Below are positions 533-50,956 of a stretch of 64,000 bases of DNA, piece after piece. This stretch comes from Paragordius varius (lineage: Eukaryota > Animalia > Nematomorpha). A program made the translations under genes and the position numbers. Numbering within the stretch: position 1 is the first letter of the stretch; each line of letters opens with the position of its first letter. The DNA lies in the NCBI GenBank assembly GCA_964247055.1, contig OZ176053.1, forward strand, positions 2,356,001 through 2,420,000, in the 5' to 3' direction. The notes under the pieces are model-generated. The model ran no database searches. It was not told the origin of the DNA and saw only the letters and a list, made by a program, of their open reading frames with translations.

Positions 533-3046
533 ATAGTTCTAATTCACCCTAAAATAAATTATATGTTTTTTAAGATAAAAAATTACTTATTTTATATTTT
601 TGATATAAAAAATTCTGATTAATATTAATATAACTGAAAAAACAATAAACTATGTCGTAAAACTATATTTCATATTAATGATGAGTTATATTAGCCCAAA
701 AACACATAATTTATTTTTAAGGTGAATTTGAATTGTTATAGGGTGATTTTGCAATGTAAATGGTATATATATATATATGCCCTAAAAAGATATTTTTTCT
801 TCCTATAATAGCAAATATTACACCGGACAATTTTAAATTAAGCTCTTATTAAAAATTAATTAACGATAATATAGCCATAATTAACACAATCTATGAATAT
901 TTCAAAGTTTATTATATATTTTGTATTCTAAATATATTTTCATGATTGCATGCATATTTTGAAGCATAAACATATTAATATATATGTGAATCTATCAATC
1001 TGATTTATAATTGTCACAAAAAATATTTTTTATAAATTTGTCTCACCTTTGGTTCGCATAACAGTGCAAAAGTTAAAAAGAGATTTGATGAAGGTCCATT
1101 AAAAACCCAAGATTTCTTTCCAATTAACTTGTATCCAATAATATTGGTCGAGTTTGTTGGGTCTCGTAAAATAGTGGCTTTAGTTTGTAGGTTAGCTAGA
1201 TCTAAATTTTTCCTACAAAATTTTATAAAAATATTTTCTTGTTTTTACATTTTTTAGGTAAAAAATGTTTTAGTGATATTATAAATAAACAAATAAATTA
1301 TTTTGGCTTATTTTTTTGGGTTTAAGAAAAAGGAATTGAGATGTAAATTGGACACTTGCTTTTAAACTTTAAATTTTTAATAATTTAAAATATTGAACAT
1401 TAAGGATAAATATAATAAGGCATAAGTTTCGTAATTCAAGTCCTACTGTAAAAATATGCAAAATATTTTTTTTGTATAAATTATCTGACCCAATCTTTCT
1501 ACAATGATTTATAGGATTTAAAATGTTAAATTATATTTTTTCAAATTTTTTTTGAAAAAATGAAATAATAAATAAATGAATTACAAATTTTCTTCATTGA
1601 GTGCGATAGCAGGGCAATATTTTCCATTGGCTATACCAGTTTGACATTCAGAACGAATCGTTTCATCTCTAATTCTGGACATTGTCTAGAATCAATCAAT
1701 TATATACACACCATTTAAAACTCAAATTCACCCTTGAACAATTCACCTTAAAAATAAATTATGAATTTTTGGGCTAATATAAGTTTACATTAATATGAAA
1801 TATATCTTTATAACGTAGTATTTTTTTAGTATTATTTTAATTTTAAACAAAATTTTATTTTTTAAAAAAATAAAAAAATATAGGTAATTATCTTAAAAAA
1901 TGCATAATTTATTTTAGCGTTATGAATTGTTTAAGGGTGACTTTGAACTTATGGTATAACAAAGGTTTTTAAATTAACTTTTTTTATATTATTTTATAAA
2001 TTTGGTATTTTTATCATCAAATTATCGGATTTTTAAATTTCAAAAACATTAAAAAGTTGAATTAATCTTTTAGGGTTAGCTATAGAAAAAAAGTTAAAGA
2101 AATAAATTGTTATAAAAAAAATTAAAGTGAGTCAACGGTTTAAAATCGTCAAAATTGACTAAAAAAGACTATATAACACTATCTATTGATTAAATAATAA
2201 ATGCATAATTGATATAAAGTTATCTCATTAATATTTGTAACAATATAAAAAAATGGCTAAATTTAGGCTCGAAATAGTGATAGTTAAGAAAATATTTAAA
2301 GGGATACAAAAAATATTTATTTATTTATAATATTAATACAAATTTCATAGCTGTTTGGCATATTCGCAGATATTTATAAATAATCATTTTTTTTTAGAAA
2401 TAATTAAGTTCGGCCATAAAAAAAGCATTTTTAGGGACATGAGACCCGTAGGCCGCAAGGCATATTAAAATCATTGTGTAATATTTGGGAACATAATTAA
2501 ATTTTTTGGATATTCGTATGCAATATAACTTACTTGTGTTGCCGAATGATAATTAGCTATAGTTGCCCCAAATGATGAATTTCGTGATATCTCTTCCATA
2601 ACTTGAGCAAAATTCGAAATGGGTAAATTACATCCACCTAAAAAATTGTCAAACTAATAAAACCATATTCAGCTTGAATAGGTAAACTTAAAATGGATGT
2701 TATGTTTTGATCATGGCCGTCCCATTCGTAAAATATGGATTGACCCTCTTCTATTTCAGGATATAGCAGGGAATCCTGATATATGAAATAAAAACTATAC
2801 TTGATCCAAATTCCCCTGAAATAAGATTTGTAAAAATGAATCTCGGTATGCCTTTTTCTTTTTTACGAAATATGGACGCTTAACATCCACTTCGGTATCA
2901 ATATATTTATATCTTAAAGGTATTTTTTCATCTGGATCTGGAATCAATTTGGGTATATAGTTAAATAGAGCAACAGATTTGCTAAAATATTTTTTTCTAA
3001 TGGCAAAACTCGTATTTGTAAATAAACCATGTGAAATTTTATTCAT
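239..3046 (-). CDS. ACAD9: Diverged acyl-CoA dehydrogenase 9-like protein (ACAD9/VLCAD family), 5' part; gene continues beyond window start
   Basis: Exons 3046-2801, 2775-2664, 2637-2534, 1685-1585, 1212-1047, 371-239, all GT-AG and phase-compatible (end of the last exon is uncertain). Spliced protein has a basic presequence-like N-terminus, then SFLQILFQGNLDQDSLLYPEI, LPIQAEYGGCNL..FAQVMEEIS, IANGKYCPAIALNE, YKLIGKKSWVFNG..NLFLTFA and KLGAFLID..KPYDKLGL, collinear with the recalled ACAD9 motifs VPEEYGGLG, LASGEHIAAFCLTE, LNGSKVWITNG and KPEDKLGI. Confidence 0.78.
478..528. repeat. (TA)n microsatellite
   Basis: Uninterrupted AT dinucleotide run directly abutting a MITE end. Confidence 0.95.
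529..763. mobile_element. ~235-bp hairpin MITE flanked by (TA)n, copy 1
   Basis: Inverted arms aattcaccctaaaataaattat / ataatttatttttaaggtgaatt with (TA)n on both sides. Related copies at 1711-1954 and 38179-38403, partial copy at ~51310-51430. Confidence 0.7.
1711..1954. mobile_element. Hairpin MITE, copy 2 (ACAD9 intron)
   Basis: ccatttaaaactcaaattcaccc ... gggtgactttgaacttatgg inverted ends in TA context; same family as 529-763. Confidence 0.65.
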
Positions 3047-12588: not shown

Positions 12589-12601
12589 TATCTCCTTATC
12601 C
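12589..12601 (-). other. Polypurine tract
   Basis: GGATAAGGAGATA immediately before the 3' LTR TG; overlaps the pol stop codon. Confidence 0.75.
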
Positions 12602-15600
12602 AAATCCGAGCCGATCTGGTGCTTTTCTTTCCCTAAGAGGATATATCCTTTCAGGTTCTTTCTCAGTTGTCTTTTCCGTTCTTATTTCAACCTGGGTGTC
12701 TTTCTCGTTTTCTTTTTCTTTGCTTGGTTCCTCCCCCACCTCCCGATTATTGGTTGTCATCTCTTCATCTGTTTGGTTTATCGTTACATTATCCTCCTCC
12801 TCAACGCCGTTCTCGACTCCTGTCGGCCGTAATTGATCCGCATGCTTGCGAAGTGTTCGATTTCCATCTTTAACCGTGTACGAGAGTACCCCTGTTCTCT
12901 CCAAAATTATACCTTTTCTCCACCCTGAATTGATTTCATTCTTTATGTACACTTCTTCGTCCGGTCTAAAAGTTTGATTAGGAATTATGTCGTCCTCTAA
13001 TTGTTGTGCGGGTGTTTCCCTAACCCAAGAGAAGGGGGTATTAATCTGTCTTTTCAGAAATAAATTATACGGGCACTCTTTTGTGGCGCTATGTACGGCG
13101 GAGCGATAACCCCATAACACTTGGTTTATTTTTTTGTCAGGAGTCAGCTTGGAATCCGTTAACGATTTATAGTTTGCTTTTAAGGTGTAAATGACCCGTT
13201 CCATTAGCCCATTTGTTCGTGGATGATAGGGGGCGCTAGTGACATGTTTGATGTTTGCTCGTTGCAAGGTATCTTTAATATCTTTCGATGCAAAATATGA
13301 TGCATTATCGGTAACTATCATTCGGGGAAACCCGTACCTTACACACCAAATTTCCAACCAATGTATTATGTTTGCAGAGTTAACAGTTCTTAGCAATTCG
13401 ACTTCAACCCATCTGGAGCTACTATCGATAGCTACTAACCAATACAACCCATCTATAGGACCGGCAATATCAAGATGTATCCTTTCCCAGATACTCGTAT
13501 TAAAATTCCATTTGTACGTTGGATAACTTTTTATGTTATTCCGGTTTAACTGACACCCCATACAAGATCTCACATAACTTTCAATATCTTGGTTTATACC
13601 TGGCCAATAAACCCTTGCCTTGGCAGACTCTTTCATTACATTAGCCCCCGAATGTCCAACATGCAAAAATTTTAACGTTTCATTTCGCAACGCCTTGGGT
13701 ATAAACAGACGATCGCCCCAATACAACAAACCATATGATTCTTGTATTTCGTTTCTTATACTCAATACCGAATTTAGAATTGGAGCTGACCAATCATTAT
13801 GATGTAGAGCCGATTTTAATGCCATCAAAAACTCATCCTGTAAAGTATTTTCTTTCATTCGCTGTACGCTTAAGTTGTCAGTTGTTAGAAAGTTGATTTG
13901 CCTGGGTTGCTCTTCAACTTCCTCAGTCTGTTCTTCATACGGTAGACGAGATAACCAATCCGCTAAATTTTCCGAACCATTAATATATTGTATAGTAAAA
14001 TTATAATCGGCTGTTCTGAGTATCCATCTTACTAATCTACTATTGTTAATATTACTTAGATCTCTCTTAAAACCAAACAACTTGATCAGGGGTTTATGAT
14101 CGGTTAGTAATACGAACTTTCTGCCATACACAAACATTTTAAATTTTTCTAGCGCATATAAAATTGCCCTTGCTTCTTTTTCAATTACCGAGAAATGTTG
14201 TTCTGCCTTCGCACATTTTCGAGACGCAAAAGCTATCGGCCGTTTTCCCTCACGTGTCATATGTGATAAAACTGCTCCGAATCCGTCATTAGATGCATCT
14301 GTTTCCAACACTAACGGAAGGTTCGGGTTAAACGGTATTAGACATAAGGCATTACTCACCAACAGTTTAGCTTTATCAAAAACCCTCTCTTCTTTTGTCG
14401 ACCAACATCATTTCTTAGAACCTGTAAGCGCATGTAAGTCCGCGATTGTAGCATGCAAAGACGGAATAAAACGAGCGTGAAAATTTAACATTCCCAAAAA
14501 AGACCGAAGTGATGTTTTATTGGTAGGTGTAGGACAATTCAAAATTGCTTTTACTTTTTCGTTATCAGGTTTAATTCCTTTGTCTGAAATTATATATCCT
14601 AAGTATGACACTGAGGAACGAGCTAATTGGATTTTATCCTTTTTTAATTTCAAACCCACAGCAGCTAATTTGTTCAACACTTTTTTCTAAATTATCCTTA
14701 TGCTCCATTACCGTTGTTCCACTAACAATTACATCATCTAAGTAAACCGCTGTACCTGGACAATCTTTTAATAACTCATCCATAATTTGTTGAAATATCG
14801 TGGGTGCACTAGATATTCCAAATGGCAGTCTCTTAAATCAAAAAAGGCCTATATGTGAACTAAACGTGAGTAAATGTTGATAATCTTGGTGTATCGGCAT
14901 TTGCCAGTAAGCTTCTTTTAGATCTAAGGTCGTAAAAACTTTTCCTTGCCCGATTTTAAACACTAACTGATCAAATGTTGGAATCAGATGATCTACAGGA
15001 ACCAGACTTGGGTTTAAAGTAACTCTAAAATCACCACATATGGGAATATCGTTATCATTCTTTTTAACTATTACCAATGGAGTTACCCAGTCAATTCGTG
15101 TTTGCGAGGGGTTTATGGACTCTATAATACCCAGACTTTCAAGCCTCTTTAATTTACTCTCCACCTTAGACTGAAGCGGAATAGGTACCCTCCTGGCCGC
15201 AAATCTTTTGGGGATACTCCCTTTTTTGAGAAACAACTTGATGGGTGATCCCTTGTAACACCCCATACCCTCACAAAACAAATCCTTAAATTTATTCAAT
15301 TCCACGTAATTAACATTTTTTACACATACAGGCTCTGGAAATCTGCATTCAAAACTTTTCATCCATGGTAACCCAAAAATGTTACCCCAATCATCCCTAG
15401 TAACCATACATTCCAACTGTTTGACCATACCATTCCATTTCACATCTACAACACATTGTCCCATCACCTCTACACCTTGCTGGTTGAACCCAACTATTGG
15501 ACCCGCGGGAGCTAAGGTCGGCCTCCCAATCTCCATCCACGTGCTCTTCCCAATCAATGATATTTGAGCTCCGGTATCGTACAACATCCTCACCCAATGG

Positions 15601-16345
15601 CCATTCAGACTTGCTTGCGTTCGGGCTTCATTATTATTATTGTTACCATTCAGTATGTTAACGCGCCGGCAACACCTGCCAAAATGACCACGTCCTTTGC
15701 ATCGGTAACACTCCTTGTTTGAAGCGGGACACCAGTTGATCGCATGCGCGTATCCACATTTTCCACATTTTTTTCTTATCATCATAACCTGCCTATTGTC
15801 GGGACCCTGATCAATCAAACAGCTGTCCGCCTTTTCGTACGCCATTGCCATTTCTACCACCATCTCCAACGTAACCGGTTTCCCATCAACCATTGCATCT
15901 GGAAATTTTGTGAACAGATCTATTTCCAATCTTTTGAGTTGTAACCCTCCAACAAACCCATCTCTGATTCTTAGCATTGCATCTTGCCCAAAGTTGCACC
16001 GGGTAGCACATTCCTTTACTCGAATCAAAAAATCCATCACTGATTCCGTGGCTTCCCTCCGGAGTTGCGTAAACTGGAACCTGGCTGCAAACACATTGTA
16101 TGTCGGAGCAAATATTTTTTTCCCAGCTGCTACCAAAGCATCTCAGCCCACTTCCTCTAACAGTACGGGATAAAAGAATTTCTTCAACTTTGGAATATGG
16201 GATAGACCAATGTAGGCCAATAGTAAGTTCTTTTTGTTTCGTCATCTTCTGGAATTAATTTCACTTTTAACATTCTCTTTATATAATCGATATAATCATC
16301 AAAGCTAGTTGCGGGATCATAAACTTCCAGACTTAATTTCTCCAT
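12596..16345 (-). pseudogene. gag-pol (Gag, protease, RT, RNase H, integrase) with 3 in-frame stops and 2 frameshifts
   Basis: Start MEKLSLE at 16345; protease YDTGAQISL; RT LDLKEAYWQ, LPFG and YLDD; RNase H ETDAS..TDHKPL; integrase HVGH..CMGC, HLDIAGP, VTDNA, GLMER. TGA at 16143-16145, 14838-14840 and 14408-14410; frameshifts in A-runs at ~16231-16235 and ~14681-14686. Confidence 0.93.
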
Positions 16346-22037: not shown

Positions 22038-23012
22038 TTATTTACCAGTCAAGGTATGACCGATCTTTTGTGCAGCGTGTTCAACAGATTTAGCTGCACT
22101 TTCAAGCCCTTCCTTCAAAACATGGGCACCCTCAGCCAAATTTTCAGTGAATGTATGCATCCCATGCGTTCCATGATGCGTACTACCCTTGTTAATGGCG
22201 GTTCCAGTTTGGTTGTAGGCGTGTTTAGCTCCTTCGTGTACGTTATGACCGGCATTTCGCACCTCTTCAGACACAGTATTTGCTCCTTTAGCTCCAGCAT
22301 GACGTATATCCTCACCAACCTGTTGGGCTCCGTGTTTAACATTATCAAAGGTGTTTTGGCCTTCATGGATAACTTTGTCACTGCCATATTTAACGTGTTG
22401 GCCGGCTTGATCAACACCGTGTTTCACATTTTGCCCAAACTGGTTAGCGCCTTCCTTAACGTTTTCATAGGCGTGTTGTCCTTCATGTTTAACCTTGTCG
22501 GCTCCGTACTTGATGTTTTGACCAGCTTGATCTATACCATGCTTAACGTTTTGACTAGCTTGATTGAATCCATGTTCAGCTTCACCTGCAACTTTGTTAA
22601 CGCCATGTTTGACATTCTCGTAAGCTTGATTAGTGCCCTGTTTAACGTTTTCGTAGGCTTGGTTTGTGCCATGACGAACATTTTCAGCCGTTTGATTCAA
22701 AGCATGCTTCCCTTCATTCATTGCGGCGTTCACATTGTGTTTGACTTCGTTTGCACCTTGTTGAACTCCGCGATTTATATCATTGGCTGCATTGCTGAAT
22801 CCTTGCTTAATCTCTTGTCCGGCTTGTTTAATAGTTTCCATATTAATGTTTTTTTCACTTGGTTTAGGATCTCGAGGTGGTGTAACTTTTTTTGACCAAA
22901 AGAAATAACGATCACTTGTTTTATCGGTATTGGTAGTAGAAGAGGTGTCTTTACTAGCAAAACGTAAAGAATTATTAGCCAATACAAAAGGTCGAATATA
23001 GTAACGAATCAT
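22038..23012 (-). CDS. LEA-like 11-mer-repeat hydrophilic protein with predicted mitochondrial presequence, 324 aa, intronless
   Basis: First ATG at 23012 (the track's 23042 start is a TTG). N-terminus MIRYYIRPFVLANNSLRFAS is Arg-rich with no acidic residues. Body is 11-mer repeats (TNQAYENVKQG, VDQAGQHVKYG) rich in G/A/N/Q/H/K/E, with no Cys and a 120-nt internal duplication. Confidence 0.82.
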   Translation of the reverse strand: MIRYYIRPFVLANNSLRFASKDTSSTTNTDKTSDRYFFWSKKVTPPRDPKPSEKNINMETIKQAGQEIKQGFSNAANDINRGVQQGANEVKHNVNAAMNEGKHALNQTAENVRHGTNQAYENVKQGTNQAYENVKHGVNKVAGEAEHGFNQASQNVKHGIDQAGQNIKYGADKVKHEGQHAYENVKEGANQFGQNVKHGVDQAGQHVKYGSDKVIHEGQNTFDNVKHGAQQVGEDIRHAGAKGANTVSEEVRNAGHNVHEGAKHAYNQTGTAINKGSTHHGTHGMHTFTENLAEGAHVLKEGLESAAKSVEHAAQKIGHTLTGK

Positions 23013-25984
23013 TTTTTCTTTCTTTAAACTAAAAATGGCCAAGGTTATATTGGGCCAAAAATTGGGATATTAAATATACGAATACAAATTTTATGCAAAT
23101 AATTAATTTAAACGGTTAAAAATAGATTATATATATTATATATGATGAATAATGTGTTTTATTAGCTGAATGAACGCCTACCCTACTTTGTACTAGCAAA
23201 TTATGACTTGCAAAAATTTTAATATAAAAATATATCATGCATTTTTTTAAACCAATTGTACAAATATATGACCCATTAAAATTAATAAATGGATAATATA
23301 TGTAAAAACTTTAAAATTTACCTTTATTTCGTAGAGGTTACAGGAATTTATGTCAAAATAATTAATAATGAAAAAAAAAGATTTGTATTTTTATTTAAAA
23401 TGGTTATTGTTTGTTTTTGGTTTGTTATATTTTTTTGTTTTTTTGTATCTGCTCTCTATTGACAATCTGTTTTGTCGCAATTACATATATAAAAATTGCT
23501 TTTAGCGTATAGTCGAAGCGATATATACGTTAACTTATTATTGGGAGAAATATATGTATTGTGTATATCTTCTCTATGTTTTTGGCCCGAAAAAAAATCA
23601 ATAAAGATATGGCGGTGGTTAAAAATTATTGAGACAAATCTCAAATTATCATTATACTAGTTTTGCAGGTAAAACATTTGCAACAAATGCATAGTTTTTT
23701 ACCTTTGGTAAAAATTGGCACGAATTGCATTATAGTATGTGATATTTTCCGTAATAACGGACTATATTACCTTTTTCAGCCAAATTTGTATAAAGTATAT
23801 GCATATACTATATATATAGATATGTTAAATTGATAATTTATTGGCATAATATTGCATATATTGGTTTATTTAAGGCTAATAGTTTGTTTGTACATCCAAT
23901 TTTTTAGATCGTAAAATAATACACATAAATTGGCAATAGTTAATATAATGTTATAATAATATACATTGTATCAAATTGGAATTGTATACCACAAATTTGG
24001 GTTAAAATTATTTCTACCTATTGAATTCATTGAAAATAACTTCTCACCTAAATATTATTGCCCTACTGTTTTATACAAACTCATGGGAAATTTTGCTGGC
24101 AAAAATCTCATTGTTTTTAGATTGTGTTGCTGATAAAGCTATTAAATTATTTAGTAAGTTGTACAGATATCGATCATTATGGTTAAACTTTGAATTAAAC
24201 ATTATAAAATTTATAAAAATCACAGGCGTTAGAGATTACATATATACAAAAATAAATTTTAAAATTGAGGTTGATTACATTTGCTAAGCAAATATATCAG
24301 AATAATGTAGTAAGGATTATCATTAAAAAAATAAAATAATCTTAAAAATGACGTATATTTTGTACATGCTGTCCTGTCCGTGTGATACAGTCAACACCAT
24401 CATTAGTGAATTGATGTTATATGTTTTCTGTAATGAAAACAATAAAAAACGGTCTACCAACACGATTTTTTATGGATTAATGGAAAAGCGCCAGACTAAA
24501 TATTTGGCTTTTTTACGGGAAGAATGTAAACCATGATTCGATCAAACCTGATACAAGATTTTTGAGTAAAATGCTTAAAAGTCATTTTTTATGGTGCCAT
24601 GTTAAACAGATAGTTTGCACAACCCATTTATACGAACCCGCGAACCTAGGAATCCATAAGATCAAGGAGGTTTTTAAGAGCTTAAAGCCACTTTATTTGC
24701 ATATGGTATTTTGCAGAGGTAAAACCCTACACAGCGGGTAAATTAACTTTAACACTTGACATAACCTTTGTTTTAATACTGATAATTTTTTAAATATCCT
24801 CTTGAATTTTTGCAAAAAATATTAATTTACGTGGGCAGCGGGTAATTATAACGGCTAATCTAAAAATAAAAGCCGGCTATGTTGGGTGTATTCGCAAAAC
24901 ATAATATATTAGAAAAATGGGCAACATTTTTTTAGCAAATTCTCTTGAGCCATTTATCCTAGTGATGCCTACCAAAAATTTTAAAGGGCCGAAAAAATAT
25001 TTTTTTCGTCTCAAGAGCTATGATAAAAATTAAAATAATAAAGCTGTACGACATTTTTTCAGATATTTATACTCCAAACTTGTACATAAAAAAATTTAAT
25101 AAATAATTCAAAGCCATAAAGAAGCACTTTAGGGCCGCGGTTTAAGTACCATTGTTATATATATATATTATATACATATATTTATGTTTATTAACTTTTT
25201 TATTTTATAGATTACCTTAATTTAGATTTTCAATGGTCGATAGTTGATAAACATCCCATCGATTCCTTCAAATAAATTAACGGAAGATAGGACTCAGATC
25301 TAGATGCGATTGATAAGAAAGTTAGGTTCAATAAAAAGTGTTGTTGGTTGAATCCATCCTGTTTTAACTTCATTATTCTAATTTTCATTAGGCCTATTTA
25401 GCAACTAAGTACACATTGGTTCCCATCGAAAAAGGACTACAATGCTCTACAACAGGGGTGTACAATATAAATGACATCGCGGGCCGCATTAGAAATATGT
25501 ATCGGCATTATCGAATATTTTGTTAGATTTTAACATAAATAAGACTGTAATGCCAATTCAATATAACGATTTTTCTAGTTTGTTGCCGATTCGATGAACA
25601 CATTTTGAAACTTTGTTTAATAAACAATTTTACCAAGATTTTTGGAGCATAATTATGCCAAGTTTTTTTACGGGCAACACATAATGTTACGGAAAACCGC
25701 ATATGGCTCTCTGGACTTGTGCTGGACACCACTGCCCTAATACATACCACAAAAATATTAAAATTGCATCGTGATGAATTGAGAATATATGGCCGAAACC
25801 CCGTCGTCAATTATTAGAGTTATCTAGGTTAGCAGACATTAGAAAAATGTCAAATAAACAATAAATATCTATATAACTGGCAGTCCAATAAATAATTGTT
25901 GATTAATATTTGATTCCATCGTCGCATTCTATTCATTTATAACGTATTATTTATTTTATTTCAAATCTTCATAAGATAGATATA

Positions 25985-27255
25985 CACTGTGTGCAAAAAA
26001 GAGGGTCATTTTAATTTAACGAAAAATTTTTTTTTTCATGAGATAGCTAATGACCAGTGTATTCATTTGCCGCAAAAATTTTTATTTGTTGACAACCTAG
26101 TTTTTAAAATAATGAGAGAAGATCGAAATCGGGCAAAAAGTGAAAATTAAGGATAATTAAGGGTAATTCAAAAAATAATGATAAAATTTGAAATATTATG
26201 GGTTGTTATCATTTAAGGAGATATTTTCAATATATAAATAGCCTAAAATCTATGGTTAGGGTTTCTATAAAATTTCAGCTCAAAAGATGGCGTTTTTCTT
26301 TTATCACACTTAAAAGACAAAATAAATTTAATGAAACTATATAAAAATAATTTTTTTAATTATCTACTACCTATCACTATTAAAATCTTAATATATTTTA
26401 TTCAGTAAAATAAACTTCGATATCAAAATAAAACCAAAAATATTTTTTTTTATTTTTTGTTTGTCATCTGGTTTATGAGTGTATAAAAAATTTATACTGT
26501 TTTATTTTGGATTCTTACATGATTAGGAATTATTAAATATATAATTTATGCACAGTATGATTGAAAATTGGAATATCAACCAAAAGATTGTACGAATCCC
26601 AATACAAATATTAATTTGTCATAAAACAGACTTGTTAGAAGAAATTGTAAGGATTTTTTGGTTGATATTCCACTATTTTCAAATCCTATTTTGCACAAAT
26701 TTTATACTTAATAATTCCTAATCATGTGGGAATCCAAAATAAAACAGTATAAATTTTTTATACACTCATAAACCAGTTGACAAAAAAATGCAAAAATAAA
26801 AAACAATATTTTTGGTTTTATTTTGATATAGAAGTTTATTTTACTGAATAAAATATGAATGTTAAGATTTTAATAGTGAGTTTAGGTAGTAAATAATTAA
26901 AAAAAATTATTTTAATATAGTTTCATTAAATTTATTTTGACTTTTAAGTGTGACAAAAGAAAAACGTCATCTTTTGACCTGAAATTTTATAGAAACCCTA
27001 ACTATATGATTTTAGGCTATTTTTATATTGAAAATATCTCCTAAAATGATAATAAATCATAATATTTTAAGTTTTATCATTATTTTTTATATTTCCTTAT
27101 TTATCCTTAATTTTCACTTTTTGCCCGATTTCGATTTTCTCTCAATATTTTAAAAACTAGGTTGTAAACAAATAAAAATTTTTGCGACAAATGAATACGC
27201 TGGTCATAAGCTATCTCATATAAAAAAAATTTTTCGTTATTTTTTGCACACAGTG
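25985..27255. mobile_element. 1271-bp foldback (long-TIR) element with TA target duplication, Tc1/mariner-like ends
   Basis: TA|CACTGTGTGCAAAA ... TTTTGCACACAGTG|TA; arms of ~600 bp are reverse complements along their length, with a ~70-bp spacer at ~26585-26655; no ORF. Confidence 0.88.
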
Positions 27256-28022
27256 TATATATATGTTCTAGTAAATAATCATATCAGGATTCTAAAGGTG
27301 CTTTTGGTATTGGATTTTTTGAGTAATATAAGAAAGTTATTACCAGATGTATTAACCGCTTCATTTTAGAAAATGGCAAAATTTAAATATATTTTACTAA
27401 ATTTGATAGCTAATTGCCTCATTCCAAAATATATGAGTATGTTTTATCAGATAATACTTAAAAAAGCAAAACAATTGTATAATTTTAATATTTTATAGTT
27501 TTCTTAAAATAAACGAAGAAGATTAAGGTTGCAGAATAAGAATCTTAAATACATGCTAGAAAGTGACATCAAAAGAAATTTGTCAAAAATGCATATTTTC
27601 TATTAAAATTTGAAATTTGGCAAATGAAGATTACTTCAATTTTGAGCATTATAGAAACGGTATAAAAACGTTTTAAGATATTAAAATTTTTTTTTCTAAT
27701 ATTCGTTATGCTAAACATCACCCTTAGCTTTTGAGCTAAATAATTTCGTTTTTATTTATGTTAATTATAAAATTTTGCTGTTTTACGCAGGTTCCCAAAT
27801 TTAAAAGCAAACGAATTTTTAACTAAATTCTGAGGTGATTGAAATGTTTAGCATCATGGAATCAGATAGGTAATGTTTTTATAATATTTTAAAGCGTTAT
27901 ACCGTTTCTATCATGCCTCAAAATAGTGTGAAACACGTACGCTCCAATAAAATTTTGCGATTCTAATTTTTGAAATTTTTTCAAAAATTTTTTTTTTCAA
28001 TGTCGTTATTTAGCATTTAAAG

Positions 28023-28268
28023 CAGGTGTCCATCACCCTGCCCTCCAATATATTTTTGCATCCCACGAGTAATCTCATTTTTTACATAATTTATACAGAA
28101 TTGATTTTCTCAAAAAAATACGATTAAGTTTTTCCGATTAATGAGAAAGAAATATCAAAAATTGTTATAAATAGAAGTTTTTACATGCCCATAATTTTGC
28201 GAATGCGGCCCATAAGATTTTTCGACCCAAAAATGCGCCCGCGCAGTCATTTGTGTTGGACACCCCTG
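28023..28268. mobile_element. hAT (Buster-type) MITE
   Basis: CAGGTGTCCA ... TTGGACACCCCTG with perfect TSD ATTTAAAG (28015-28022 / 28269-28276). Confidence 0.85.
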
Positions 28269-29099
28269 ATTTAAAGATGCTTGTCGCGCAACCTGGGAAT
28301 TAATGTTTATTTATCGTACAAAACCAATTTGATATTTCAAAACACTTTTTCCATAAAATTAAAAATGCTATTTCTTTCTCTTCAAATTATAAGTTAAAAG
28401 ACTTGTTGGTCGACAAATTTAAGTTATATATAAGTTGTTAGTAATAAAAAATGGAAAAACAAAACTTGTTAAATAAAAAATCTGTGGTGGTCGCAGCATT
28501 ATAAAATATATAAAAAAATGTTGTAACTTAAAATAATTTAATGCCTTTCCACCATGCTTAAAAATACGATAAAACTCACTTTGTTAAAATTTTTCTATAA
28601 ATTAGATTTTAACAAAATTATGCATTTTCGGGAAAAATCGTTTGATGTCAAAAGTTTAAACATATGTTTATTATACAATCTCTGCATTTTTGCGTTTATT
28701 TTAAGACAACTTTCCCCATCCAAAAATTTAAGACTTTCAAGGCCCACATCTAAAACCAAATTCCTTTAAATATATAGTTTCTAAATATTTTAGGATATTT
28801 TCTGAAATGAAGAACTTTGACCATTTTTTACCAAAATGTGCGCATATTTTGCCATTTTTTAATATGGAGCAGCTATCACAAATGTGCTAATATTCTTACA
28901 TGAATTACTAGGCCCCAACTAAAATCGCCATGATAATCATGGTACTTATATCGGAATAAAATTTTATCAGGATATTTTTTAACCCATAATGTGCTCAATA
29001 ACAAGAAAAATGTATAATTTTGATAAGGCTTATGGTTTTGGGGCTTACAACTGATATCTGAAATATTTTCTTATTAATGTGCGCAAAAAATCTGATAAA

Positions 29100-31580
29100 A
29101 TATATATACTCTGATAGTAAAACGTATTTAATTTACCATAGTGCTTTGATTTTAGCCCTTACGTGAGATTTGAGAAGTCATTACACTTTTGTGATAACTG
29201 CCTATATAAATGGTATTTTGACAAATAATTTTTGGTAAAAGCTAAATGTTTTTTTCCAAAATTATCATTGAAAATTATATGATATACTATAAAAAAATAA
29301 AACAATACTTTTAAAAAATTTACAGTTCTAAATGCAAGCTGTAGTAACTCCTCCAAAATCAAAATATTATTGCGCACGTATTGTTAAATTAATTTTTAAA
29401 TGTTCATTCCATAAAAAATCGCTAAAATGTATCCTCGACTACATATAAAAGCAAAACCTGGTTTATAAAAAATAAATTTTAAGAGTGGACGAAAGTTCCA
29501 TTTTTTTGCCCTTCTAAAATGATATTGTCCTCTTAAATAAAAGCAAAAATGCCTAAATTGCATAATAGAAATTTTAAATATATGCATTTATATCAAAAAA
29601 TATTTTTAACACTTTATTACCTTTTACTTTTTAAAGCTAGTTTACATTTTGGGGTAGTTTTATATCCCAGAGCTCAAATAAACTATAGGTTAATGGTTAT
29701 TTTAGTTGAATAATTATTAAACATTACATCTATTAGATAAATAAGCCTATATCTTATACAGTTAGGTAACTTCTAGAGTATAAAATTGGAAACAAACAGC
29801 TGATAATAAAATTAAAATATAGGTTTTTGCTGGTAAATTATAGTTTGGAAGCTTTTTAAACTTAATTATCCACATTTTACAACCATAATATAAACTTTTT
29901 TTCCTGTTGCATAAGCGATTTTAAAAAACTATGGAAAAAATGGCGGCAAAAAAGTTTGAGATGAGGTTTTTTTTACAATGCATTCATTAAATTTTTTTTC
30001 CATGATGCACCTAAAAGGCTAAAGAATGCATATTTTTTCGGCTTAAATCCTTAAATACTTTTTAAGATATTCATTCAAATTACTCTGGGATATAAAACTA
30101 CCCCAAAGTTAATTGTTAAGAAATGCTTCACAAAATTCAATTTTAATCAAATTTTTGAAGGGTACTTGAGACTATTTATTTCTAGGTATGGGAGAAACTG
30201 TATAGGACCGCTTAAAGATTTTAAAAATACTTTTTTATATACGTGTTCTGAACATTGTCGCTTCAGAATTTTAATTCAAAGGTTTCTCTTTCTAATTTTG
30301 GTGAATTTAAAAAACACTATTTATATTTAACATAAATTGACGTACGATTAATTGAATTAAAATTTTGAGATGATAATGGTCAGCATCATTAATTATATTA
30401 AAAAAATGTTTTCAAAATCTTAGAGCGTTAACAGTTTCGATGATGCCTCAAAGCAGTATGAAGTACGCTAATTTTGCCAAAAATTAAATTTTGAAAAAAA
30501 TATGCTTTTTTAATACTCCACTACCTTTTGGGGTAATATTCCAGAGCGAATTGAATGAATATAAAGTATTTATAGTATTAAGCCGAATTTAACAATATGC
30601 TTTCTTGAGTCTTTTAGACGCATTATGCAAATTTTTAAATGTAAAAGTGTAAAAAAACCCTCACTCAAACTTTTTTGCCTCCATTTTTTCTATGGATTTT
30701 TTTTAAATCGCCTATGCAACAGACAAATAAATGTATATTATGGCTACAAAGAGTATATAATCAACTTAAATGTTTCAGGCTACATTTCCAGCAAAAACTT
30801 GATATATGTTGATATCAGCTGTTTGTTTAATTGTTTTTGCAGCTGTCCCAATTTTAGACTTTAAAACACAAAACTGTAAAAAATATCTAATTTATAGCTA
30901 ATGCACAAGAACAATGTTTAATAATTAATTTTAACTCAAATATCTTTCATAACTGTTGTTTTTACAAGATTAAGCCCTGGGATATAAAACTACCCCAAAA
31001 GAAAAAAGGACAAAAAGTGTAAAAATGTGTTAAAAATATTTTTAATTGATATCAAAATTTACCCTATATTTATATTTTTTATTGCGGAATCTCGGCATTT
31101 TTGTGTTTATATAAAGACATCCATTTTAGAAGGGCAAAAAATTCGGGATTTTTGAAGCTTACATCTAAGAATTAATTTTTTAAAAATATTGTTTTGCTTT
31201 TTATACGTAGTTTATGAGATATTGTAGTGATATTTTTTATTTTTTACTGCACAATCTCGGCATTTTTGTGTTTATATACAGAGAACTGACTTTTTTTAGG
31301 CGCAAACAATTAGGGACTTTCGGAGCCCACATCTAAAACTAAATTTTAAAAATATTGTTTTCCTTATATGTAGTTTATGATATATTTTAGCGTTATTTTT
31401 TAAAAAAAAATATTTAACTTCAACTAAAAAAAATTTATTTTAAAAAGTGCGCAAATATATTCTATTTATAAATATAGAGCATTAGTGACAAAAGTGTGAG
31501 TAACTTTAAATCACCCATAAGGACCAAAACCAAAAGCGCCATGATATTCCGATGCCTTCATGTCATATACTTTATCAGGA
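29100..31580. repeat. ~2.5-kb imperfect foldback of the modular AT-rich repeat family
   Basis: Paired landmarks: ttttgcccttctaaaatg (~29500) / cattttagaagggcaaaa (~31125); ggggtagttttatatcccag (~29650) / ctgggatataaaactacccc (~30980); gtttgagatgagg (~29955) / cctcactcaaac (~30660). Boundaries approximate. Confidence 0.65.
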
Positions 31581-32582
31581 TATTCTTTTGCCACTGTGTA
31601 TATGCTAAATTTTAAACTAATTAAATAAAGATGAGCGGTGTTTTATGATATTTTAAAGGAAACGGTATAAAACACTTTAAGGCATCACATACACTTTTTT
31701 ATATCATTTAATGATTTTGAATATTTTTAACACTCAAATTAATTAGTTCGTTTGTATCAATAAAATTAATTTTTGTAAAAAAACAATTTACATGTAACAT
31801 AAGATTGAGGACCAGCAAATTTACTAAAATTCTGAGGTGATAAAAATGTTCAGCACGATCGATTTTTATAAAAGTGTTTTTGTAAAAAAAGCTTCTATAC
31901 CGTTTCTATCATGCCTCCAAATAGTGTAAAGTACCCCTCATTCAACAAAATTTTGCCATAAATTTTAATGCATTTATGTTTTTTAATGACAAAATTTAGC
32001 ATTTAAAATTTTCAGAATATTTGCGTTATATTCAATATATTTCCCAGTTTGAAGGGCAAAAAGGTTTGCGTCCTTCGGAGGCCACATATAAAAGTTAAAA
32101 TATCAAAAAATATTGTTTTGCCTTTTAAATATAGTATATCATATATTTTAATAATATTTTTTTAGATAAAGCATTTAACATTTACCAAAAAACATAACTA
32201 TGCGCTATTTTTGCAATTTTACGATGTCGAATATTTACCATAAAAATGAATAACCTTCTGATATCACTCGTAAACCTTAAAACCAAAAGCACATAAGAAA
32301 TTCTGATATATTCTATCATAATGTTTATATTTTATCAGGATAATTTTAATACTCAAAATTTTGGACTCAATGTAAAGTATCTTATATATTTTATTATTTG
32401 TAAAATAACTTGTTAGTTTTTACCATAAAATTTATTCGGCAAAATGTGCGCAAATTTGCGATTTGATATGGAGAAATTAAAGTCTTTTTTATATTAACTC
32501 GTAGGGCCCAAAATGTAATACTCCATAAGAATCCTGTTATATTTATTCATCATAATAATTATATTTCGACAGGATATTTTAA

Positions 32583-33132
32583 CACTTAGATACAACAAAT
32601 TTTCAGTCCTTCGATTTATATTGGGGTAGTTAGACACCCCAGGCTTGTTTGAAATTAAATATTTTAAAAAATATGGAAAAAATTGAAACCACGGCAAAAG
32701 TTAACACTTATATAACATTAATGAAACGAAATATAAAAAATTTTTATAAAAAACTTATTATTACTTATTGAGAAGTAACTCAAAGGAAAAAATATAAACA
32801 TGACATGTGTGCAAAAGCCAAATATAAAAATGCAAAATATACCACTTTTTCTGGTTATATAAATGTTAAATATAATTTAAGTAAAAAAGTAAACTTAATT
32901 TTAGGCTTATCAAACACGATATTTTGCACAAATGTTGTAAAATTAAAATGGCATCCAAGTTTGATACGAAACTTTTTTTCCAATACTAAATTTTATTTAA
33001 TATTTTGGCTATTTATAAAAAATTTTTAGGATTTTAAATATATATTGGAACCGTTTTTTTTCGGAAATTATATTAAAATATTAACTTAAATATTGCCTGG
33101 GGTATTTAGGTATCACAATTTGAATCGAAGTG
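32583..33132 (+). mobile_element. TTAA MITE, copy 3
   Basis: TTAA|CACTTAGATACAAC ... AATCGAAGTG|TTAA, both TSDs intact. Confidence 0.82.
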
Positions 33133-33373
33133 TTAATACCCCCCGATTTCGCACGCATTGGTATTTTATGGAGTAATTTTTAAAATATTTTATAATAATC
33201 ATGCCTCGTTAAAAAACGATATTGTCTAAAACTTTAAAATATAAGTGCAATAAAGGCGATAAAACTAATTTATGAAATAATTTAATAAATAAATAATACT
33301 TTAATTTATTTTTCTTTCATACGAGTTATATCTGTTTTTTGCACATTCATTGGCAAGTACTTTTAAAATTTAA

Positions 33374-33922
33374 ATGGATCAAGTCATACAAGGTTTTCGA
33401 AACGCCGCTCAAAAGATTGGTGGAGCAGGCTCGGATATAACACAGGGAATATCAGGCGGAGCTACTGCAACCTATGATGCCGCTGCTCAATCCGTTGATC
33501 AAGCAAAACAAGAAGTCAAAAACAAAGTATGTATACTTATTACATAAATTTTATAATTTAATTTTTTACCCCATTTTCATTTTTTACTTATCCAGGTTGT
33601 GGCTGTAGGTGAAGGTGCTCAACACATTGTAGGCGATGCGGTTGGTCAAGTTGAACAAGGATTCACACAAGTTGGACAAGGGGCCCAAAATTTGGCTCAT
33701 GGGGTCGCTCGCGGAGCAACGAATGCCTATACCCATGTTCAGCAAGGCGTTAAACAAAAAGTTGACGTTGTTGCTGAAAATGTTAATGCTGTCGCATCTA
33801 ATGCCAAACATGGCGTCGAAGAGGTCGGTCTGCATGCTGGCGATAAAGTTAAGGGAGGCACGGAAGGAATAATTAATGTACTTCGGAGAATTAGTGATAT
33901 CATCCCACATCATAAATCTTAA
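33374..33922 (+). CDS. Second LEA-like repeat protein, 159 aa, no targeting peptide, two exons
   Basis: Exon 1 33374-33526 (MDQVIQGFRNAA...EVKNK), 69-nt GTATGT..CCAG phase-0 intron, exon 2 33596-33922. G/A/V/Q-rich with no Cys or Trp. Shares QGF.NAA, KHGVEEVG and GDKVK-like motifs with the 22038-23012 protein. Confidence 0.82.
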
Positions 33923-35435: not shown

Positions 35436-37229
35436 CTATAAATTTTGATAGTACTCAACTAGAATTTTCCAAGCTTCCGGTTCCATAAAACCATCAGGCG
35501 GTTGAGTGCCTGTCCGTGCAAATTGTCGCATTTTAGTTCCACTGATAAATTCAAAATCACCGGCTCGTTTTGGTTCAAAGAAGGCCATACATTGATTAAC
35601 TTTATCGTAGGCGGCTACTTTGAATGGAATGATTTCAACATTGGTAAGTCCTGGGGCCATTTGTAAAACCTTTGTGATGATTTAATAAGTAATAAACATT
35701 TATTATGATAAATGGCGAAAACGTATCAATTGCAAAATTATTACATTTTAACAAAAATTATATTTACGGAGCAATTAAAAAATGGCGAATTTGTGGGAGA
35801 GTATGGCTAATTTTATCAGTATTTTATATTTTTTCGTTTAAATAAAATTTTAATGGATGAATTATTTTTTTACAATCTTTTACAGTTCCCGGGAAAAAAC
35901 GCTTAAATATACTTTTAAAATAATTTTACACATTTGGATCTTTTAAGTTTTTAAAATTCAAAAAAGACTTTATCCATAAATTAAACATGTTAATCACTGT
36001 TTAGTAGTTTTATCATTTGAAATAATTTTTTTAACAAAAAAAATTTCTCTCAAAAACCTTTTGTCCGTATGTGGGATCATATATATCTTTTCCAGTTTCT
36101 GGATGACACATACCAGCTGGATCTCGGCCCACAATATAAAAATTGACTCCTGCAGAGGTGCGTGCTTTAGCGTGCCATTGGACCTAAAATTGGCAGAAAT
36201 ATAAAATAAAAATTGTTGCAAAACATAGTTAAGTTAAATGTCATAAAAATTGGAACTAATTTATATACATAAAACTTTAATACCTAAATGATAAATATAA
36301 AAGGGACAACAGTATTTTTTTCAAATCTGGCTGGATGTTTTAATTATAACTCGTCGTTTTAGCTACCGAAATAGGGATTAAACTTTTTAATTATCCTTAA
36401 TTTTCTTTTTTTGCCCAATTTTGATTTTCCCTTAATATTTCAAAGATCACCAAATAAAAATTTTTGCGGCAAATAAATTCGCTGGTCATAAGCTATATCA
36501 TGAAAAAATTTTTTTTATTAAATATATTGCACACAGTGTACTATCAATAAGATATTTGAATTGTAATTAAATCGGTAAGTTCAAGGTTTTAAAAAAGTAT
36601 GCCTGTAATTTTTAAGTTTTATGTATAATTTTAATTTTGGGGCAAAATATGGGTTTTTTTTAAATCTAAATATATTACGTTTTTTAACCTTTTTCGCCTT
36701 TATAAACTTTACAATTTATTAGTCATCATATATATAAAATAATGAGATATAAATATTTAAAGAGGATATCTTATTGTTAAAAAATGTCATAAAACCTTTG
36801 AAATTATATGTAGAAAAATACTTACAGTAAAAACTGAAATTATACGGACAAAAGGTTAAAATATAAAGACAAATATTAATTTGCAAAAGACAACCATACT
36901 TTTTATATCTTAATTTTTCTCTATATAACTTATTTAGTTACAATTGCAGGATGTATAATTGAATTTTTACTAATATACATATCAATTATCTATTTTGCGA
37001 TTTCAAATAATGAGTTATATTGAAATAAATCATATTTAAAGAGTGTGGTTGTCTTTTAGAAAAAAAACATTTGTCCATATATTTTTAGGTTTTGTCCGTA
37101 TAATTTTAATTTTTACTGTAATTATTCAAATAATTAAAATATTTCCTCGTTGAAAATATGTATGTTAGTTTACTTAAGCGCACCATAAAAAAATATCATA
37201 AAACAATATTTTTATCAATTCAACTAATT

Positions 37230-49400: not shown

Positions 49401-50956
49401 ATTCGAATCCCTCTGCCCTAAATATCATTCCTCTACTGCGATCAGTTACATACATGTCGTATATACTTGTGGTAATATTTCTTTTTCGCTATATATTTAA
49501 ATTATTATCCCCAATAACGAAATAATTTTGTTTGCGTTTATATTTACAATGAAAGTTCCAAATTCAATTCTACTGCCATTGTTTGTGAGACCACGAAGCT
49601 TGATCACAAAATCAGAAACAGTAGGAGCTGATTCTATTACCCATGCAAGTGAAATAGTTTCGAAAAGTCCCATTTTACCTTCACATGGTATATTTTGAAC
49701 CCTACTTTGTTATATGTGCTTCGTATTTTTATATTAGTATCAGATATTTGTTCAATCCTTTTTTAATCAGTTTTTTATTTATTTCCAAAGAATGGAATAT
49801 ATAACTTAAAATAATTTTTATATTATTAGATATGACCAGTATGTCAAACATACCAATTACCAATTCAACAAGTCGGGTAAAAACACCTAATATTTTTACC
49901 CAATCCTCCAAAGCGGATATGGAAAAATCGCAAGCAAAAAACGAGTCTGTGATATTCCAAGGCCCAAAAGTCATATCTATGCAAGATCAAGAAGTTAAAA
50001 TAGAAAATTTCTATTTTGACACGTATAAAGGGACCAAAAGTTTGCATTTAAATTATAATTGTATTATAATATTGAAATAAATGTGTAAATTTACTTATAA
50101 ATATAATTCTAAAGGTATGGCAACGCATTTCTTACTTATCTTCATATTCATAATCTGTTTTGGACTTTTTATCCTATTGATCTATTTGATATTACACATT
50201 TTTCATTGCCAAACGTGGCATGGATTAACTAAACGATCATCATCCACCCCAGATTCAATTAGGAAATGCTGTTTTGGTGTACCATCATTCACAGACATTT
50301 TGGGCAACTTTAATCCCATAAAAAGTGCAAACAACTCCAAGTATCAAACATTATCCAATACATCAACAAAATCTTCGAATAGCGAAAGCAGTTTCAATAA
50401 TATTGGGCACAAAAATTGTAAAGACCCCTGTCAATATAATTATCAGCATACTCATGCTTTAGTTAACTCTTCTTTCACATCGCAATCTACCCTTGAAGCT
50501 ACGAGCTATAAAAATAAAAATAATTACAATCCCTGCGTATTAAACACATCAAATGTATATGACGTTTACCAAAAAGATGCATTTGTCATCAAAAATAGTA
50601 GTAGCGTTGATGATGGACGAAATGAACAATTTACAATTAATACTGGGACAAATTCATTCATGAATAAATTGTGGTCACGTTTAACATCCAAAGTCCGTGG
50701 TAACAATCAAAATCAAAATACTAATGTAAATATCCAAGAAAACAGTTTTATCGACCAAGGGCCAATTACAGCTCATGTTAATAGGAACAAAAATATTCTG
50801 TCAACCCAATCAGTAAGTTATAATAAATGGGATCATAATTATGATAGTTTTTATCGGTGTAGACCGTATTTGCTTCTCCAACAAATACAGAATCAACAGA
50901 GGCAAAGGCAAATGCAGGGAGCTCATCACCCACAAAATTTTGATGCACATATCTAA
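46446..50956 (+). CDS. EVA1C: EVA-1/EVA1C-like single-pass receptor with two SUEL (Gal_lectin) domains, ~687 aa
   Basis: Exons 46446-46542, 46603-46922, 48001-48127, 48206-48385, 49316-49471, 49556-49687, 49830-50039, 50115-50956. Hydrophobic leader; SUEL1 TCQNE..LVCP..ALYG..CLS..LQ..CQDKREC..FGNPC..KYLAIKFKCQP; SUEL2 VCED..LEC..ASFG..CFGKDSC..LCP..YIHVVYTCVP; TM FLLIFIFIICFGLFILLIYLIL; long low-complexity tail. Confidence 0.88.

Follow-up and report, generated by a model that had tools for sequence, protein, structure and literature searches.

Two facing orphan genes of the nematomorph Paragordius varius predicted to encode long amphipathic helices of the 11-residue repeat type

An 11/3 helix is an amphipathic helix with eleven residues per three turns. 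Helices of this kind are usually unfolded in water; folding sets in upon removal of the water or when the chain comes to rest flat against a lipid or protein surface. The type is known from group-3 late embryogenesis abundant (LEA) proteins, exchangeable apolipoproteins, alpha-synuclein and perilipins (PMC5889406, PMC6164224). Group-3 LEA proteins are also expected to be heat-soluble and disordered in water, to turn helical upon drying and to be induced during water stress or in dormancy. For these proteins, the class consensus of Dure places apolar residues at repeat positions 1, 2, 5 and 9, acidic or amide residues at 3, 7 and 11, and basic residues at 6 and 8 (quoted in PMC4326354). Compartment-specific forms have been described from tardigrades: the mitochondrial group-3 LEA protein RvLEAM has a reported grand average of hydropathy (GRAVY) of -0.94, and the MAHS proteins combine a long mitochondrial targeting peptide with a hydrophilic mature part (PMC4326354). 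A literature search for LEA proteins in Nematomorpha gave nothing relevant. Our analysis concerns a window of 64,000 nucleotides from the nematomorph Paragordius varius (contig 4, OZ176053.1, positions 2,356,001-2,420,000; assembly GCA_964247055.1, 110.6 Mb in 44 contigs); this whole stretch is called the window below, and positions are counted from its first letter. The focus is on two predicted genes, A and B, whose 5' ends face each other and whose ATGs lie 10,361 bp apart (Table 1).

The explanation we favour is that A and B are two real, lineage-restricted protein-coding genes, probably derived from an old duplication, whose products would form 11/3 amphipathic helices and bind to surfaces. 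For this explanation as a whole our confidence lies a little above even.

The periodicity of the two products is central to this proposal. In A, the repeats have the core N-V-K-H-G-x-N-Q-A-x-E and a higher-order repeat of 40 residues, and their autocorrelation peaks at lags 11, 40, 33 and 22. The hydrophobic moment calculated over the whole 269-residue repeat domain of A is 0.397 at 98.2 degrees versus 0.076 at 100 degrees; exon 1 and exon 2 of B both peak at 99 degrees. Because the moment keeps its coherence at an angle of 360 x 3/11 degrees along hundreds of residues, an 11/3 amphipathic helix is predicted. AlphaFold2, run without an alignment, models A as three helices (residues 58-204, 211-278 and 283-322) behind an unstructured segment of residues 1-57, and B exon 2 as one single helix (residues 2-102) with a mean predicted local distance difference test score (pLDDT) of 89.6. 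All results for B are given per exon: exons 1 and 2 were searched, folded and scored separately, not as the spliced protein.

The two repeat domains differ in character. With a GRAVY of -1.0, protein A is as hydrophilic as LEA proteins. In most of its regular repeats, one His and one Lys recur at fixed positions, the His residues being spaced by 11 or 22. Residues 56-176 of A meet the Dure consensus at 64-66% of the constrained positions, where the maximum reached by shuffled sequences is 0.44-0.48. The fit is good at positions 1, 3, 5, 6, 9 and 11; position 7, however, is His and fits in 3 of 11 repeats, and position 8 is Gly and fits in none of the 11. Hence, the Lys-Glu-Lys core of the class is Lys-His-Gly in A. 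Protein B is shorter and more apolar than A, is rich in Val, Gly and Ala, and starts directly with the repeats, without a targeting signal. Its fit to the same consensus is 55-67%, with the basic positions mostly unmet.

Both frames look coding, because they are long and open and because their codon-position GC content resembles that of a conserved PAPSS exon in the window (35436-35660, minus strand), which has values of 0.54/0.38/0.30 at positions 1, 2 and 3. The corresponding values are 0.58/0.36/0.32 for gene A and 0.73/0.37/0.29 for exon 2 of gene B. Outside genes and transposons the window is very AT-rich (GC 0.21-0.31), and between 21 and 35 kb the only GC peaks are the two genes themselves (0.43-0.47). 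Translated from its first ATG at 23012, gene A yields a product of 324 residues; at the local composition, the chance of so many stop-free codons is about 5e-10. Exon 2 of gene B lacks an in-frame ATG, which makes the splice necessary. The layout given in the preliminary description, a head-to-head pair with an intronless A and a B interrupted once, is borne out by the unbroken frame of A, the GT-AG intron of B and the facing 5' ends. The repeats of gene A are old at the DNA level: Tandem Repeats Finder detects a 33-nt unit in only 2.2 copies (75-79%). A look-up of the exact protein sequence of gene A in public assemblies returned no record.

A 279-codon open reading frame (ORF) runs antisense to gene A (22056-22895, plus strand). 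Its codon-position GC of 0.33/0.34/0.63 is the inverse of that of real exons, which marks it not as an overlapping gene but as the mirror artefact usual for a sense frame with little Leu and Ser.

Several observations suggest that A and B are related. Three motif pairs quoted in the preliminary description are all present: IKQGFSNAA (A 68-76) and VIQGFRNAA (B exon 1, 4-12), VKHGAQQVG (A 225-233) and AKHGVEEVG (B exon 2, 70-78), and YGADKVK (A 169-175) and HAGDKVK (B exon 2, 80-86). In both proteins, the repeat domain starts with a Q-G-F-x-N-A-A motif, and the run N-x-K-H-G-V-acidic...D-K-V is found in the same order in each. In BLASTP comparisons, A matches B exon 2 at 2e-7 and B exon 1 at 0.003. 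Aligned by Smith-Waterman, A and B exon 2 reach a score of 113, which exceeds composition-shuffled controls clearly: plain shuffles have means of 43-45 (z 8.3-10.7), and 0 of 1000 reach the observed score. When the 110-Mb genome was searched in six-frame translation at E <= 10, the sole non-self match of A is B exon 2 (E 0.055, 34% identity), and the sole non-self match of B exon 2 is A (E 1.25). A joint A/B profile likewise finds A and B in the genome and no third member. The chance that two randomly placed genes would lie within 12 kb of each other is about 2e-4. Because A and B are each other's sole non-self matches and lie 10 kb apart in 110 Mb, a local duplication is probable. We infer, as the likely state of affairs, that the two genes are paralogous, and the facing arrangement is probably the result of an old local inverted duplication. 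A permissive blastn comparison of the two gene regions gave AT-rich noise only.

A genome search with the Apolipoprotein profile recovered gene A, a cluster on contig 9 and a Lys-rich ORF on contig 1. The contig 9 cluster was rejected as a gene family, for it is a short-period satellite that translates to Lys/Cys-rich repeats. This array extends over more than 30 kb (about 4,606,969 to 4,639,733; examined in 4606000-4615999) and several of its frames stay open for hundreds of codons, with Lys/Cys-rich repeats on one strand and Ser/Phe/Tyr-rich ones on the other; its matches to the profile are false and contain in-frame TGA. The contig 1 candidate (13686000-13688500, ORF 886-1845, minus strand) encodes 319 residues with a Lys-rich helical C-terminal half and a weak Apolipoprotein-profile match, and was rejected as unrelated to A and B.

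Neither A nor the exons of B reach the threshold of any Pfam family. In particular, A, B exon 1 and B exon 2 give no match to LEA_4 (PF02987) at E <= 1. A genome-wide search with the PF02987 profile also found nothing, which is a weak negative, since control genomes gave no signal either. The matches of A below the family cut-offs are to Apolipoprotein (PF01442; 36.6 bits, cut-off 90), YtxH (PF12732; 33.4 bits, cut-off 37.5, in one stretch of A), ApoLp-III (PF07464; 27.7 bits, cut-off 36.3) and Synuclein (PF01387; 10.5 bits, E 0.72, cut-off 23.3). The one match for B is that of exon 1 to the 11-mer part of the Perilipin profile (PF03036), at 12.5 bits (E 0.075), below the cut-off of 33; a PAT domain was found in neither A nor B. 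Neighbours in the ESM Atlas at 0.76-0.81, which are leads and not evidence, are At4g13230/LEA for A, and Rv1893, phasin, CsmB and synuclein (the last at 0.76) for B. A sequence search of the PDB gave nothing significant, and no relative of either A or B exon 2 emerged from a word-index protein search.

A HMMER search with A over 1.84 billion representatives, on the other hand, returned 143 matches at E <= 1e-3, with 18-44% identity in the repeats only. Those inspected by sequence, Pfam content and cluster name include a phage tape-measure protein, a BON-domain protein, a protist transcript, secreted fungal proteins (Gymnopilus, Serendipita) with a C-terminal domain of their own, and metagenome proteins with unrelated globular domains; bacterial repeat proteins match as well. 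Some of these foreign proteins (P0039, P0126) even carry His at the repeat position that it occupies in A. We rejected the 143 matches as orthologues of A: the likeness is confined to the repeats, and the N- and C-terminal domains and the kingdoms differ, which suggests convergence on one repeat type. In the data searched, which held no genomes of close relatives, A and B are thus orphans, and the unfamiliar sequence noted at the outset is confirmed by the lack of any detectable relative outside this genome. Judged from their sequences, A and B work physically like the families of LEA or apolipoprotein type and are members of none of them.

The N-terminus of A, but not that of B, resembles a mitochondrial presequence. 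Residues 1-21 contain four basic and no acidic residues (net charge +4, pI 11.0) and have a hydrophobic moment of 0.45 at 100 degrees, and an R-F / A-S arrangement offers a candidate Arg -2 cleavage site. By inspection, a hydrophobic core like that of a signal peptide is present in neither A nor B; in A, this core has only 5 residues. We lean, by a modest degree, towards import of A into mitochondria.

The spacer between the genes is of a different nature. The claim that it holds no recognisable gene stands: it contains no ORF longer than 95 residues, no Rfam family and no transfer RNA gene, and its ten longest ORFs match no Pfam family. At least 5,113 of its 10,331 bases match dispersed repeats elsewhere in the genome, all of them within 25,939-33,140. 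The clearest element in this part is a foldback transposon whose inverted-repeat arms are 86-97% complementary and of which the genome holds more than 40 copies on many contigs (83-90% identity, each matching both strands). Pieces of the older block that follows match, at 67-77% identity, DNA located beside copies of the foldback on other contigs; within the block itself there are direct as well as inverted repeats. Its piece at about 32,576-33,140 lies no more than about 260 bp behind the foldback on two contigs. The block may represent nested insertions or one larger composite element whose middle varies. Without the repeat block, A and B would be about 3 kb apart.

Table 1. Positions of the two predicted genes and of the spacer between them, counted within the window
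Feature	Position	Strand	Description
Gene A, coding sequence	22038..23012	-	uninterrupted ORF, 324 codons plus stop at 22038-22040, no intron
Gene A, residues 56-324	22041..22847	-	about 24 degenerate 11-residue repeats (register display, autocorrelation, moment)
Gene A, residues 1-55	22848..23012	-	presequence-like N-terminus, then Ser/Thr/Pro-rich linker (composition, pI, moment)
Unique spacer part	23013..25938		adjoins 5' end of A; one 52-bp match elsewhere; small ORFs; GC 0.19-0.34
Foldback (hairpin) non-coding transposon	25985..27255		1,271 bp; CACTGTG...CACAGTG ends, TA on both sides
Older dispersed-repeat block	27265..33140		5.9 kb; ends about 230 bp upstream of the ATG of B
Gene B, exon 1	33374..33526	+	51 codons from ATG; codon-position GC 0.63/0.45/0.28; moment peak at 99 degrees
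Gene B, intron	33527..33595	+	69 nt, phase 0, GTATGT...pyrimidine tract...CAG; read from the sequence
Gene B, exon 2	33596..33922	+	108 codons plus TAA stop; Val/Gly/Ala-rich helix with 11-residue period

The regions upstream of A and B share 9 ten-mers, within the range of random pieces (mean 6, maximum 25), and no heat-shock element was found in the window. Thus, with no shared promoter words, no heat-shock element and a repeat-filled spacer, nothing points to a shared promoter. Since at least half of the 10.4 kb consists of transposon and repeat DNA, we do not regard A and B as a bidirectional-promoter pair; on its sequence, the spacer is largely a later insertion of transposons and repeats and not a shared regulatory region. 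Probably, the two genes are duplicates that were pushed apart by transposons later.

The following mechanism would account for these features. An old local inverted duplication would have given rise to A and B, each encoding a long 11/3 amphipathic helix. Because A is very hydrophilic, has its fixed His and Lys and begins with a segment like an import signal, it could act as a surface-binding shield in the matrix or at the inner membrane of mitochondria, working like the mitochondrial group-3 LEA proteins. B, which lacks a signal and whose Val/Gly/Ala-rich face is more apolar, could form a cytosolic coat of membranes or lipid droplets.

What is more difficult is to separate common descent from common periodicity, and here a number of results weigh against the explanation we favour. 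When shuffles keep the 11-mer phase, the mean for A against B exon 2 rises to 81-92, z falls to 2.1-3.5 and 7-30 of 1000 shuffles reach the observed score; for B exon 1 against A, z is 0.8. Taken with the plain shuffles, this indicates that the A-B similarity is real but mainly a shared repeat pattern. The E-values of the genome search are weak (0.055 and 1.25), with three candidates scored. In a phmmer comparison with A, B exon 2 scores 25.0 bits and an unrelated repeat protein 24.9 bits; 17-23 of the 143 foreign repeat proteins match the repeat profile of A at least as well as B does, and a profile-profile alignment of the repeat units of A and B with hhalign yields a probability of 43.7%. 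The search of 1.84 billion proteins found no orthologue. The model of A has a low-confidence mean pLDDT of 61.5, with 42-52 for the N-terminal residues, and the presequence call consists of composition and a cleavage-like motif only. Finally, B exon 1 (GRAVY -0.51) and B exon 2 (-0.16) are mildly hydrophilic and not LEA-like. Hence, the term "LEA-like" of the preliminary description holds for the physical type, that of 11-residue amphipathic helices, and for A in particular; it fails for family membership and for the hydrophilicity of B. Its statement that the genes are paralogues is upheld in so far as they are mutual sole matches in the genome and exceed plain shuffles (z 8-10), and is weakened by the phase-keeping controls and by hhalign.

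The same results bear on the possibility that A and B are unrelated genes, whose 11-residue repeats evolved separately and which became neighbours by chance without forming any module. The loss of most of the similarity under phase-keeping shuffles, the bacterial, phage, fungal and protist proteins whose match to A equals or surpasses that of B, the hhalign value and the absence of outstanding similarity at the DNA level are what this view would lead one to expect; yet it leaves the exclusive mutual matches in 110 Mb, the joint profile without a third member, the close placement and the collinear Q-G-F-x-N-A-A and N-x-K-H-G-V-acidic...D-K-V motifs to coincidence, and we consider it unlikely. 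Very much less credit is due to the idea that one or both are not genes and that the frames were left open by a decayed coding-like tandem repeat, although no homologue was found, the antisense ORF is also open and the 33-nt tandem unit is still detectable. The codon-position GC matches real exons in the proposed frames only, the DNA repeats are too diverged to hold a frame of 324 codons open by chance, B needs a canonical intron and has one, and the amphipathic phase is kept over all 269 residues of the domain of A. A different proposal accepts both genes as real and sees in them exchangeable lipid-surface proteins of the apolipophorin-III, perilipin or phasin type, serving ordinary lipid storage or transport unrelated to stress or dormancy, with the N-terminus of A not being an import signal. 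It draws on the best Pfam leads (Apolipoprotein and ApoLp-III for A, the perilipin 11-mer region for B exon 1), on phasin, CsmB and synuclein among the Atlas neighbours of B, on the resemblance of B's weakly apolar Val/Gly/Ala-rich face to the perilipin-4 helix (PMC5889406) and on the missing canonical LEA_4 match in A and B. Every one of these Pfam matches lies below its family cut-off, however, a PAT domain is lacking, A has no secretion signal peptide, and the GRAVY of A and its fit to the class consensus are closer to LEA proteins than to apolipoproteins; we rate this proposal as rather unlikely. Our preferred explanation, two real and probably duplicated genes whose helices would bind surfaces, can be extended further, and the preliminary description had gone in this direction by suggesting a co-regulated protection system in two compartments, which we treat as a hypothesis. 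In its full form, a His-bearing, LEA-like mitochondrial shield and a cytosolic coat of membranes or lipid droplets would be induced in a life stage that is dormant or exposed to freezing or drought (e.g. the encysted larva), as a lineage-specific system with an origin separate from the LEA_4, CAHS and MAHS families of plants and animals. We judge this extended form improbable.

Two further features of the window lie apart from the pair. At 12596-16136 (minus strand), a long terminal repeat (LTR) retrotransposon has ORFs of 432 and 588 residues and a GC content of 0.36-0.40, compared with 0.25 in its surroundings; gag, protease and reverse transcriptase, then RNase H and integrase, can be recognised in it by eye. 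An ORF of 291 residues at 50081-50956 (plus strand) has an N-terminal hydrophobic segment and an Asn/Ser/Gln-rich remainder and could be an orphan gene.

Should A and B prove to be expressed and protective, the 11-residue amphipathic shield would have been invented independently once more, beside the LEA, CAHS/MAHS and synuclein-like proteins. A distinctive trait would then be the His at a fixed place of the helix, which might render the binding to surfaces sensitive to pH or metal ions. The locus presents orphan repeat proteins whose physical type is readable from periodicity alone, and it illustrates that paralogy of repeat proteins should be claimed from their similarity only after phase-preserving controls.

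In comparison with described systems, the unrelated 11-mer repeat proteins of other organisms share x-x-K-x-G-x-x-Q-x-G-x repeats with this locus, some of them with His at the place it has in A, but they have different N- and C-terminal domains and belong to different kingdoms. With the tardigrade CAHS and MAHS proteins, A and B have in common the idea of lineage-restricted hydrophilic helix-formers in different compartments. The tardigrade proteins, however, are not 11-mer repeat proteins, no sequence relationship to them was found, and their expression, heat solubility and protective effect have been measured (PMC4326354), whereas A and B are known from sequence alone. Closer in geometry are apolipoproteins A and E, apolipophorin-III, alpha-synuclein and the perilipins, in which an 11/3 periodicity also extends over a very long stretch (PMC5889406, PMC6164224); a weakly apolar face in which Gly, Ala and Val are abundant, the sub-threshold profile matches and the Atlas neighbours of B add to this likeness. 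Unlike these proteins, A and B stay below the family cut-offs and have no signal peptide, no PAT domain and no acidic tail of the synuclein kind, and A bears His at a fixed repeat position. From the group-3 LEA proteins, A and B are set apart by the absence of a LEA_4 match at E <= 1, by the Lys-His-Gly core of A with its one basic residue per repeat and by the much lower hydrophilicity of B. Yet the pair shares with them contiguous 11-residue repeats and long predicted helices, and A in addition has apolar residues at class positions 1, 5 and 9, amide or acidic residues at 3 and 11, a GRAVY close to that of RvLEAM (-1.0 and -0.94, respectively) and a presequence-like N-terminal segment comparable to the mitochondrial LEA forms.

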